DNA of 63,401 bases, counting the filler, from Octopus bimaculoides (taxonomy: Eukaryota), in the NCBI RefSeq assembly GCF_001194135.2. It is 7 parts of 6 records of this genome, joined end to end, with 100 filler letters (N's around TTAATTAATTAA, not from the genome) between each part and the next. Parts side by side here need not be neighbours in the genome. Positions count along the whole stretch, not along the records: positions 57,511 to 62,193 come from NW_026349690.1; 6 more parts are not named here. One strand, given 5' to 3'. This document shows positions 57,540-61,125 of this stretch, piece after piece. The notes below the pieces were generated by a model that saw only the letters and a list, made by a program, of their open reading frames with translations, did not search any database and had not been told where the DNA came from. Both the position numbers and the translations under genes were made by a program. Numbering within the stretch: the stretch's first letter is position 1; every line of letters starts with the position of its first letter.

Positions 57540-57611
57540 AGGTATTGTAAACTGGAGAGATTCTGGAAGGCGTCTGATTTGATTTCCTTGATCTCATTAG
57601 AACGCATGTAT
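57540..57611 (-). CDS. LRR exon 5 of 5: (L)YMRSNEIKEIKSDAFQNLSSLQY(L)
   Basis: 72 bp, ttatgttacag acceptor and gtaagt donor, phase 2/2, LRR consensus; lies about 30 bp from the contig end. Confidence 0.9.
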
Positions 57612-58940
57612 CTGTAACATAAAACTGGGTTCATAAGAAATTGTATAGAAGATATTTTTGGCGGTTATTAATTCCATAAAGTTCATGGCGCTGATGATGA
57701 TGTTCATGATGATGATGATGATAATAACAATGATGATGATGAAGGGAAGGAGGTGGCATATAAGTATAATGGTGGTGGTAGCATTGATAGTGGACATTGT
57801 GGTGGTGTTAGTGAAGAATATGAATTGGCGAGTAAGAGAAGTGTATATGGTGTATAGTGATGATTAACGATTAATTATTCTGGTAATGACGGTGGTTAAC
57901 ATGTCTATGTTGATGCTGAATACGATATTGATTATGATGATGTTTGAGGGAATGTTAATGTTTGCAATTATGATGATAGTGTTGAAGATTCTGCAACTGA
58001 TGGCGGTATTGTGTGTTAATGAATAATGTTGATGATACAGAGGACAATGATTAACGTGATTAAGTTTATGATTGAGAAAGATGACAATGAAAATGAGAAG
58101 TATGACGGTGATGAGGACATGGATGAGGACGTCGACAATTTTCTAAGCAGATTTGATTTCGATTTAAATAATATAGAATTTAGACGAATAGAGAATCGAG
58201 CGAATGATAACGAAAGGGAAACTATAGGGAAATCATGAGAAAAAGAAAGTGAAAGACAAAATAAGATGAGAATAGAAGAAGAGTTAAAGAAATGAAAACG
58301 AAGGAGATCGAGAAGGAGGAGGAGGAGGAGAAGAAGAAGAAAATAAAGAGAAAAAGAAGAGAAGTAGTAGATAAAGGAAATGTAAATGAAGTAGAAAATG
58401 CGGATGAAGAAATATAGGAAAAAATCGAAGAACAACAATAACAACGAGAAGAAGTGGAATTAAAGTCTTGATGGTAAACAGTTTTGGTGGAGACGTGAAC
58501 AACGCACATGATAAACAGATTGAATTACACAAACAATTTGATACACTCACATGCACATAGCCATTCACAAATACACACTCACACACACATATATATATAT
58601 GTATATATGTATGTATACATAAAGCCATTTGCTCTAAAGTTACCCTACAATTGTCACACACTGGTATTTGTTCAAATGCCAGGAACAGGCCCTCACTCAC
58701 ATTCACAGACATTAACATACAAATCACACACTTTCTACAGATTTTACAAATAGACAGAAACATACACATGCCAACACTAAAAGATTCTCCTGGATTATCA
58801 CGCTCCCATACATCCCATACCGAATAAACGGGGACACACTCTCACAGATCCACAAACAATAAAACATATCTTTGGAAAGATGTTACAGATTTAGAACTAC
58901 ATCGTCTATGAAATCCTTTAAAATGACTTTATCAACTTAC

Positions 58941-59012
58941 AGATATTTTAAGCTGGACAGTTTCTTGAAGACGTCTGCTTTGATTTCTTTGTAATTATTA
59001 GAACTCAAATCT
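58941..59012 (-). CDS. LRR exon 4 of 5: (L)DLSSNNYKEIKADVFKKLSSLKY(L)
   Basis: 72 bp, ttgtgttccag acceptor and gtaagt donor, phase 2/2, LRR consensus. Confidence 0.9.
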
Positions 59013-59267
59013 CTGGAACACAAAACTGAGTTAATAAGAAATTGCATACAAAATATTTGTGATAAATTTAGTCCAAAAAATTTGCTGATATAGGCGAGGT
59101 AAATTAGAACAGGATGCTTATTAATTCCATAAAGCACATGGCGCTGGTGAAAGAGAGAGCGAATGTAGGGAGGGAGAAGGACGTGGATCGAAAACGAATG
59201 GGAAGATTTTAAATAACTACGAATATATTGTCTGTGAAATATTATGAACACGATTTATCCAACTTAC

Positions 59268-59339
59268 AGTGTTTGCAAACTGGTCAGGTCATGGAAGGCT
59301 GTTGCTTCAATTTTTTCGATATCATTATTTTGTAAATTT
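59268..59339 (-). CDS. LRR exon 3 of 5: (L)NLQNNDIEKIEATAFHDLTSLQT(L)
   Basis: 72 bp, tgtgttacag acceptor and gtaagt donor, phase 2/2, LRR consensus; flanks differ from those of the other four exons. Confidence 0.9.
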
Positions 59340-60547
59340 CTGTAACACATAACAAACATGCATAACAAATAAATAGTTGAAGACAAAACAGAAATAAAAT
59401 ATGGAGGTAAAAATGTCAAAGATGGAGGAAAAGATGAAGATGATGAATAAAAATATGAATAATGTAGTTGACAGTTGACAGTTATATACACACAAAAAAA
59501 AACGCGCACACAGACAAATATGCTCGCACAAACACACACATACACTCAGACACAATAATTTATATTTATATGTATAAAAAACAAAGAGAGACAGACAAAG
59601 AGACAGAAGGAAAGATGAGAGAAATTCACAGAGAGCGCGCAAATATATGTTGAAAAATATGAGTGCTGATACACACCCAGACAATCAAATATCCACGTCA
59701 ATGTCCAGTGGTCCATATTAAGACACATTCACAAACACATCTATGGCCAGGGGAGAATGAGAAAGATGTTGGTCGAGATTTAGGGGCAGATGTTGAGGAG
59801 TATCGAAATGTAATTTGTGTCTTGTTTTATAAAAGAGGATCAAATAGAAAAAAAATCGAATGAAAAGTAAGAGATGAATAAAAGTAGGAGAAAAATAATA
59901 ATAATAATAATAATAATAATAATAATAATAATAATAATAATAATAATAATAATAATAATAATAATAATAATAATAATAAGAAGAAGAAGAAGAAGAAGAA
60001 GAAGAAGAAGAAGAAGAAGAAGAAGTAAAGTCTGTGATGGCAATCTGTGGTGACGGAGACATAAACACCGCACCTGGCATACAGACTGAGTTACACATAC
60101 ATTTTAATACACTCGCATGCACACAATCACACACACACACACACACATGTATGTATGTATGTATGTATGTATGTATGTATGTATGCATAAACTCGTTTGC
60201 TCTAATGTTTTCCTTTAATTGTCACATATTCATATATTTCAAATTCAAGGAACAGACCCTCACTCACACTCACAGACATTTATATACAACAACTCACTCT
60301 TTCGACAGAGACAGATTTTACACATAGAGAGAAACACACACATGCATGCACCAAATGACTCCCCTGATCTATCAGCCTCTCGTATATGCCAAAGCTAAGA
60401 AATGGGCAAACACTAACACACATAGATTAACAAACAATACCCGTTGGACAAACGGATGAGGTAGCTTAAAATGTAAAATGGCAAGATACTACAGATTTAG
60501 AGATATATTGTAAATGAAATCCTATGAAAAAGTTTTATACAACTTAC

Positions 60548-60619
60548 AGATTTATTAAACTGGATAGATTTTGGAAGATGCCTGCGTTGATTTCCGTGAT
60601 ATTATTAGAATTGAAGAAT
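60548..60619 (-). CDS. LRR exon 2 of 5: (L)FFNSNNITEINAGIFQNLSSLIN(L)
   Basis: 72 bp, taatgttccag acceptor and gtaagt donor, phase 2/2, LRR consensus. Confidence 0.9.
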
Positions 60620-61053
60620 CTGGAACATTAAAATCGAGTTAATAAGAAATTGCATAAAACATATTTGTGACAAAATTTAGTCTAAACAATTAGATAACAG
60701 AAGCGATGGAAAGTAGAACACGATAATTATTAATTGCATAAAGTTCAATGCGCTGGTGATGTTGTTTATGATAGTGATAATGGTGATGGTGATGATAACT
60801 ATGATAGTGAGGAGAAGGCGGGGCTGGAGTAGAGAGATAATGTTGGTAGTAGAGAAGATAGTGCTCTACTTGAGCACTATCTGAGTAAAAACCTTGAGTA
60901 AAAAACGAGCACACACTCACACACACAGCCACAAACAGTAAAACACATCTTTGGAAAGTCGAGTGAGGGTGCTTAAAATGAAAGATGGGAAGATATTACA
61001 AATTTAGAATTATATCGTCAATGAAATCCTATAAAAAGACTGATTGAACTTAC

Positions 61054-61125
61054 AGATATTTTAAACTGGGCAGATTTCGGAAGGTGTCTGCTTTGATATC
61101 CTTGATTTCGTTAGAAAGTAAGTAC
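61054..61125 (-). CDS. LRR exon 1 of 5 (24-aa typical LRR): (L)YLLSNEIKDIKADTFRNLPSLKY(L)
   Basis: 72 bp, bounded by ttatgttccag acceptor and gtaagt donor on the minus strand; phase 2/2; open frame matches LxxLxLxxNxIxxIxxxxFxxL. Confidence 0.9.

Follow-up and report, generated by a model that had tools for sequence, protein, structure and literature searches.

Leucine-rich repeats (LRRs) are encoded one per ~72-bp exon in Slit, LRIG and LGI genes, in which the introns share the same phase. One-repeat phase-2 exons, with growth from a prototype exon, have also been described for the gonadotropin-receptor/LGR genes (summarised in PMC11378527); further afield, tandem 72-bp phase-2 LRR exons, for which alternative splicing has been reported, make up the brown-alga ROCO arrays (PMC11378527), and arrays of 90-bp phase-2 LRR exons are found in Tetrahymena (PMC6564038). 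Among the adhesion-type G-protein-coupled receptors (adhesion GPCRs), an octopus-specific expansion called 'group 3' has LRRs in 5 of its 22 members and is expressed in the axial nerve cord, suckers and skin of O. bimaculoides and in the gills and skin of C. minor (Ritschard et al. 2019, PMC6408891). A search of the available literature library for the exon-unit architecture of octopus adhesion-GPCR LRR arrays returned no description. Here we describe such an array in a 4.7-kb piece (positions 57511-62193, from NW_026349690.1; 34% G+C) of a window of Octopus bimaculoides DNA, the window being the whole stretch of 63,401 nucleotides, filler included, that was joined from seven parts of assembly GCF_001194135.2. 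The array lies on the minus strand; coordinates are given in plus-strand numbering of the window. Most likely, the piece comes from within the LRR region of an octopus-lineage gene of the LRR adhesion-GPCR type, with its exons spliced serially.

The piece contained five LRR exons, all on the minus strand: exon 1 (61054-61125), encoding (L)YLLSNEIKDIKADTFRNLPSLKY; exon 2 (60548-60619), (L)FFNSNNITEINAGIFQNLSSLIN; exon 3 (59268-59339), (L)NLQNNDIEKIEATAFHDLTSLQT, which is of a 'QNN' subtype and differs in its acceptor-side flank; exon 4 (58941-59012), (L)DLSSNNYKEIKADVFKKLSSLKY; and exon 5 (57540-57611), (L)YMRSNEIKEIKSDAFQNLSSLQY. Every exon consisted of one nucleotide (G or A), 23 codons and a terminal CT, making 72 bp, and all five had an acceptor of ttccag or ttacag type (ttccag in exon 1) and the donor CT/gtaagt. 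Intron phase was 2 throughout, and the split codon, CT/G or CT/A, specified at every junction a leucine that is position 4 of LxxLxLxxN, so that any subset of exons can drop out with the frame and the junction leucine intact. Retention of the intron after any of the five exons would give CTG TAA, a leucine followed by a stop. These data bore out an earlier note on this DNA, which had described five open 72-bp, phase-2/2, frame-symmetric exons of one LRR each with strong splice sites; all five of its peptides were located on that strand. The five exons are thus genuine, with one LRR coded by each.

The exons were separated by intron 1 (60620-61053, 434 nt), nearly all of which consists of conserved donor-side and acceptor-side flank modules; intron 2 (59340-60547, 1208 nt), which contains (AAT)28, (AAG)16, (CA)n and (ATGT)n tracts and shares homology with intron 4 over the 5' parts of both; intron 3 (59013-59267, 255 nt); and intron 4 (57612-58940, 1329 nt). 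The spliced 121-aa peptide matched Pfam LRR_8 at 128.8 bits (cut-off 27; E=6e-38), and its repeats, which passed the Pfam gathering score, were of the 24-residue type LxxLxLxxNxIxxIxxxxFxxLxxL. Across the eight framework positions of each exon, 39 of 40 residues were kept. A profile of the exon with 45 nt of flank on either side detected exactly five copies in the piece and zero relic copies. A protein profile applied to its six frames found no further LRRs, and none of the other exons expected of the family (LRRNT, LRRCT, the common C-terminal region, GAIN/GPS or seven-transmembrane [7TM]) was detected within the 4.7 kb.

The five exon translations were aligned, and the resulting profile was used in an exhaustive HMMER search of 1.84 billion representative proteins. 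The top match, P0003 ('leucine-rich repeat-containing protein 15-like [Octopus sinensis]'), scored 243 bits over 10 stretches, and the next scored 149 bits. Besides its 10 LRRs, P0003 has a signal peptide, an LRRNT, a cap that contains Cys and a C-terminal region, and the peptide of the piece was 45-50% identical to it and to P0154. The closest relatives of P0003 were all Octopus proteins and included the following: P0154 ('toll-like receptor 5', O. bimaculoides); P0155 ('SLIT and NTRK-like 4') and P0045 ('slit homolog 1-like'), both from O. sinensis; P0157 and P0179; and three O. vulgaris proteins named 'adhesion GPCR G6-like', P0191, P0212 and P0268, which overlap with P0003 in its C-terminal region and have GPS, 7tm_2 or both. 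Past these Octopus entries and P0153, which is unnamed, named matches, from amphioxus, insects and fish, reached at most 34% identity, and no squid or cuttlefish proteins were among the P0003 relatives listed. An LRRNT, LRRs and 7tm_2 occurred within the single model P0191, and a 1088-aa gene with LRR_8, GPS and 7tm_2 is also present at the P0003 locus. A weak precomputed Pfam match to GAIN_ADGRA3 was recorded for P0191 and P0212. P0191 has 3 LRRs, P0003 has 10 and P0154 has at least 14. The LRR exon units were absent from the O. vulgaris GAIN/7TM loci L003 and L004.

A word-indexed search of a 5.8-billion-sequence database with the spliced peptide returned two weak unrelated matches only, and an exact look-up of the ten longest open reading frames (ORFs) of the piece found none on record; because the word-indexed searches returned no octopus protein, the five exons are unannotated. 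The peptide search that the earlier note had proposed gave nothing relevant by word index; the exon profile led to the Octopus family, with P0003 first. Two side observations concern the matched proteins. Members of a single octopus family go by disparate automatic names (LRRC15-like, toll-like receptor 5, SLIT and NTRK-like 4, slit homolog 1-like and adhesion GPCR G6-like), and several of P0003, P0154, P0155, P0045, P0191, P0212 and P0268 look like fragments of longer genes. The next-best profile matches, P0004, P0005 and P0008, were membrane-spanning LRR proteins whose long cytoplasmic tails are repetitive (repeats of 'TSGHDQTGQGQSQAITES').

Membership in another family with one-repeat exons, namely LGR/GRL101-type rhodopsin-class receptors, Slit or the Toll-like receptors, was considered at this point. 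LGR5, LGR4, TLR3 and LRIG1 were among the best PDB sequence matches of the peptide, 72-bp phase-2 LRR exons are classic in gonadotropin-receptor/LGR genes (PMC11378527), and NCBI names some of the relatives 'toll-like receptor 5' or 'slit homolog 1-like'. The PDB matches, however, which also included IGFALS and LRRC15, were generic and represent the typical extracellular LRR class, and intron homology at the DNA level binds the piece to the P0154 family. In that family Pfam recognized only LRR, LRRNT, GPS and 7tm_2; none of TIR, 7tm_1, LDLa, EGF or LamG was found in P0154, P0003, P0191, P0212 or P0153. Thus, the homologues lacked the TIR domain of a Toll-like receptor, including the 'TLR5' P0154; had 7tm_2 and GPS in place of the 7tm_1 or LDLa of LGR/GRL101; and lacked the EGF and LamG domains of Slit, including P0045, which is named for it. 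Membership in any of these three families is therefore extremely improbable. The earlier note had left the family unassigned; with fair confidence, its homologies place the piece in an octopus-lineage LRR family linked to GAIN/GPS/7tm_2 adhesion GPCRs, and the likeness to LGR/GRL101 and Slit drawn in that note holds for exon architecture only.

The DNA of the piece is homologous to an annotated octopus gene. In a BLASTN comparison with the P0154 locus (L001; O. bimaculoides CM046629.1:10400675-10483064, 82 kb), 47 high-scoring segment pairs with 73-84% identity were obtained, introns included, the longest of which (933 nt; 73.6% identity to L001 3662-4579) covered exon 1 and its upstream intron. 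Six more units, with ~76% identity to the piece, were contributed by L002, a paralogue locus of O. sinensis. An exon-plus-flank profile identified 23 units on one strand of L001, of which 21 were intact 72-bp exons with AG..GT borders and an open LRR frame; the donor was GTAAGT in 19 of these and GTGAGT in 2. P0154 uses one repeat per exon and takes the exons in order. An LRR exon of 69 bp (L001 22126-22194) and a unit without an intact 72-bp exon and without a counterpart in P0154 (L001 19211-19307) are exceptions, within the family, to this exact length.

The first 52 residues of P0154 proved to be the translated intron flank upstream of an LRR exon (L001 12364-12519), and this N-terminus ('MYWLCVSNRLAKFLSQLCSIQLFLNSTLCSR') matched the acceptor-side flank at 60629-60703 of the piece (E=0.001). 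Since its N-terminus is intron read-through, the P0154 model is 5'-truncated. The start of the model sits in a region with several assembly gaps. Upstream of that annotated start and on the same strand, L001 387-9814 held seven intact 72-bp LRR exons; no database protein contains them, and a word-indexed search with the seven in spliced form recovered no octopus protein. The gene model neighbouring P0154 stops at L001 9818, 4 nt past the last of the seven (9743-9814), which fits donor read-through into CTG TAA. The matches between the piece and L001 were not colinear in order and never exceeded 85% identity, as befits a paralogue or DNA of a different octopod species; the lack of colinearity ruled out that the piece is a simple orthologue of L001 1-9858.

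Several observations weigh against assignment of the piece to an adhesion-GPCR-type gene. The 4.7 kb contained no non-LRR exon of the family, so that the link to GAIN, GPS and 7TM is one of homology; the 82 kb of L001 showed neither a GAIN nor a 7TM exon; and the relatives P0003 and P0154 end without a 7TM region. The gene could instead encode a secreted LRR protein. The five exons were in no protein of the 5.8-billion-sequence database, with no ORF on record, and the non-colinear matches do not separate orthology from paralogy with L001. The family of P0003, P0154 and P0191 is probably the 'group 3' expansion (PMC6408891). By homology to the models that combine LRRs with GPS or 7tm_2, adhesion-GPCR domains would nevertheless be expected downstream of the array in this gene.

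The array grew by repeated exon-plus-intron duplication. Self-comparison of the piece, used to map repeats, and multiple alignment of the flanks agreed with the proposal of the earlier note that exons 1, 2, 4 and 5 share homologous flanks for this reason: in these four units, identity was 82-91% over the 50 nt upstream and 75-96% over the 60 nt downstream. The donor-side flank of exon 3 was also homologous (66-72%), a feature absent from the earlier account, and its acceptor side was of another type. There were no insertions or deletions (indels) in the 5 x 72 bp of exon sequence and many in the flanks. A younger segmental duplication was represented by 57511-58294, which holds exon 5 and ~700 nt of upstream intron, and 61026-61841, which holds exon 1 and its upstream intron (84-91.5% identity; offset, ~3515-3547 bp). 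An older one, with 74% identity, was represented by 58427-59150 (exon 4, both its flanks and the 5' part of intron 4) and 59992-60759 (exon 2, both its flanks and the 5' part of intron 2); all four copies were on the minus strand. In addition, 60457-60771 and 60964-61262 were 80% identical. The partial intron upstream of exon 1 (61126-62193, minus strand) ends at the edge of the piece; its 61126-61841 section and the 3' part of intron 4 are homologous, and 62043-62183 matched the donor-side intron module located 173-315 nt downstream of exon 2. From the presence of this module, another exon probably lies just beyond 62193.

The history of the array was not purely one of recent local amplification. 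In neighbour-joining trees, exon 3 clustered with the L001 exons B387 and B5541, also of the 'QNN' subtype, and since this subtype is common to both loci, part of the layout is old and predates their split. The upstream flanks of exons 1, 2 and 4 clustered at 82-90% identity; the exons themselves were 71-75% identical to one another, as distant as they were from L001 exons. In the units of exons 5 and 1, the deep intron (57885-58294 and 61432-61841) was 91.5% identical and the exons 79% (p=0.005). The excess divergence of exons 1 and 5 included synonymous sites and therefore points to gene conversion or a mosaic origin in the history of these two exons, not to selection at the protein level.

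Evidence for selection also bears on the possibility that the array is decaying or unexpressed, consisting of pseudo-exons left by segmental duplication or of a reservoir copy beside a functional paralogue. Such an origin would suit the absence of the five exons from annotated proteins, the similarly unannotated seven intact exons upstream of the P0154 model, the relic unit at L001 19211-19307, and an overall exon divergence about equal to that of the flanks. Neutral evolution was simulated on a star tree with the observed number of substitutions per exon (20,000 runs). All five frames remained open in 3.7% of the runs, framework retention as observed (39 of 40) occurred in 0.015% (P=1.5e-4), and the two together occurred in none of the 20,000. 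Taken together with the unvarying AG and GTAAGT and the constant length, these results show that an LRR fold has been selected for ever since the duplications; purifying selection acts on the LRR framework. A decaying array is accordingly unlikely: all five exons keep the 72-bp length, open frame, AG, GTAAGT and framework, for which the neutral chance is ~1e-4 or less; indels are lacking in the exons and numerous in the flanks; and truncation of gene models at assembly gaps, as in P0154, whose start is translated intron, accounts better for the lack of annotation. We infer that the gene is expressed and that its exons are spliced constitutively.

Outside the framework, constraint was weaker. 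The ratio of nonsynonymous to synonymous substitution rates (dN/dS) ranged from 0.25 to 1.44 in pairwise comparisons among the five exons. In a larger set of 32 exons pooled from the piece, L001 and L002, dN/dS calculated from 13 independent exon pairs was 0.19 at framework positions, 1.15 at the concave-face x positions and 0.60 at other x positions, and residue entropy (32 exons) was higher at the concave-face x positions than at the other x positions (Mann-Whitney p=0.01). The concave face thus evolves at about the neutral rate, which fits relaxed or diversifying selection; at ~1.15, the dN/dS at these sites, a check suggested in the earlier note, does not demonstrate positive selection. 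The same note had reported strong variability of the x positions near LxLxxN on a conserved framework; this was confirmed, except that the variability was not limited to that region, nearly all non-framework positions being variable, those of the convex side included. An argument for positive selection from exons evolving faster than introns was likewise unproven (variable-column tests, p=0.07-0.29).

The ~100 nt of intron on either side of the exons were ~80% conserved across units, paralogues and species (piece, L001 and L002) and were more conserved than the exons of the same pairs. Use of these proximal flanks as a neutral yardstick was dropped because they are conserved throughout the family. 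They probably carry splicing signals, e.g., the branch-point-like cttattaac located ~20 nt upstream of the AG, and their conservation may reflect splicing constraint or concerted evolution.

Such unusually conserved flanks could also mean that splicing is controlled, and the earlier note had proposed that the receptor diversifies by skipping or shuffling of cassettes, as in immune or chemosensory repertoires. Regulated skipping, choice or shuffling would yield many isoforms (cf. brown-alga ROCO and Dscam); phase 2/2 exons with an identical junction codon preserve the frame in any subset, the concave-face positions are near neutrality, and brown algae are reported to splice 72-bp phase-2 LRR exons alternatively (PMC11378527). 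However, the one homologue mapped to its locus, P0154, takes up all of its LRR exons in order. When a one-repeat exon is duplicated, frame symmetry is automatic and in itself no sign of alternative use; it is common to the constitutively spliced LGR-type genes. Moreover, dN/dS did not exceed 1 with any confidence. Regulated cassette use at this locus is therefore quite unlikely, and the proposal of the earlier note was not upheld, the mapped homologue using its exons serially and positive selection not being demonstrated. For the octopus-specific adhesion-GPCR family at large, combinatorial use of the LRR exon arrays is very improbable; if it were true, the arrays would form an isoform-diversity system beside the expanded octopus protocadherins.

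We favour serial splicing in a gene family that would consist of octopus-lineage cell-surface or secreted LRR proteins. Overlapping gene models suggest the following layout: a signal peptide, an LRRNT, a variable number of 24-residue LRRs of the 'typical' class, an LRRCT, a common region whose fold has no name, GAIN/GPS and a 7TM region of secretin type, as in an adhesion GPCR that bears LRRs. Each 72-bp exon would supply one turn of the LRR solenoid, and the array would be enlarged and reduced by unequal crossing-over of exon-plus-intron units, with some later gene conversion; gain and loss of units in this way would explain the variation in LRR number among paralogues (3 to at least 14). Joined serially, the exons would form one long solenoid that binds a partner through its concave face, and this solenoid would be either the N-terminal ligand-binding domain of an adhesion-GPCR-type receptor or part of a paralogous LRR protein of that family that is secreted.

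Compared with described systems, the piece most resembled the octopus LRR adhesion-GPCR-like family, with which it shares 72-bp phase-2 exons and introns homologous at 73-84%, whereas its five exons are in no annotated member, so that its full membership is a reading from homology. With the vertebrate gonadotropin-receptor/LGR genes, the piece has in common one repeat per exon, phase 2 and exon duplication; those genes, in contrast, are ancient and stable, and their units are not described as having recognizable intron homology, whereas the octopus units still share intron sequence. The receptor class also differs, being 7tm_1 in LGR and 7tm_2 (adhesion type) in the octopus relatives. The brown-alga ROCO and Tetrahymena arrays are similar in their exact-length phase-2 single-LRR exons, unequal crossing-over and variable exposed residues, but come from unrelated lineages, and their LRRs and the domains attached to them (ROC-COR in the algae) are likewise of unrelated classes. 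For those arrays, unlike the octopus piece, there are reports of both positive selection and alternative splicing. Vertebrate ADGRA2 and ADGRA3 (GPR124 and GPR125) resemble the octopus family in having N-terminal LRRs on a GAIN/7tm_2 receptor. The ADGRA receptors have few LRRs and an Ig domain. The octopus proteins, by contrast, have 3 to at least 14 LRRs and another middle region, and their GAIN_ADGRA3 match is weak.

The introns of the piece had a few features of their own. Perfect microsatellites, comprising (AAT)28 adjoining (AAG)16, (CA)n, (ATGT)n and (TGA)n, were located at 59894-60025, 60120-60185, 58589-58621 and 57692-57742; sub-threshold Rfam matches of microRNA type (mir-3149 and mir-297) fell on the CA/ATGT microsatellites and were dismissed as noise, as were Pfam matches on intron ORFs, which were below the cut-off. 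An acidic ORF of 70-75 aa was present on the plus strand in both copies of the young intron duplicate (58026-58238 and 61573-61800). Its match to Pfam Tma16 was sub-threshold (19.8 bits; cut-off, 22.7), and the ORF probably reflects chance in a stretch that was duplicated recently.

Growth of LRR regions by duplication of phase-2 single-repeat exons is already textbook knowledge, and the array is an unannotated gene fragment, not a new mechanism; the exon-unit architecture of the octopus LRR arrays, of which the literature library searched gave no description, is an incremental point. Its value lies in placing unannotated octopod DNA, on present homologies, in a lineage-specific receptor family that would vary its ligand-binding domain through gain and loss of exon-plus-intron units, so that its paralogues range from 3 LRRs to at least 14. 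The public models of this family are inconsistently named (TLR5, SLITRK4, Slit-like, LRRC15-like and ADGRG6-like), and at least one of them, P0154, is 5'-truncated; for these reasons, counts of the octopus adhesion-GPCR repertoire and the accompanying domain statistics may understate its LRR content.

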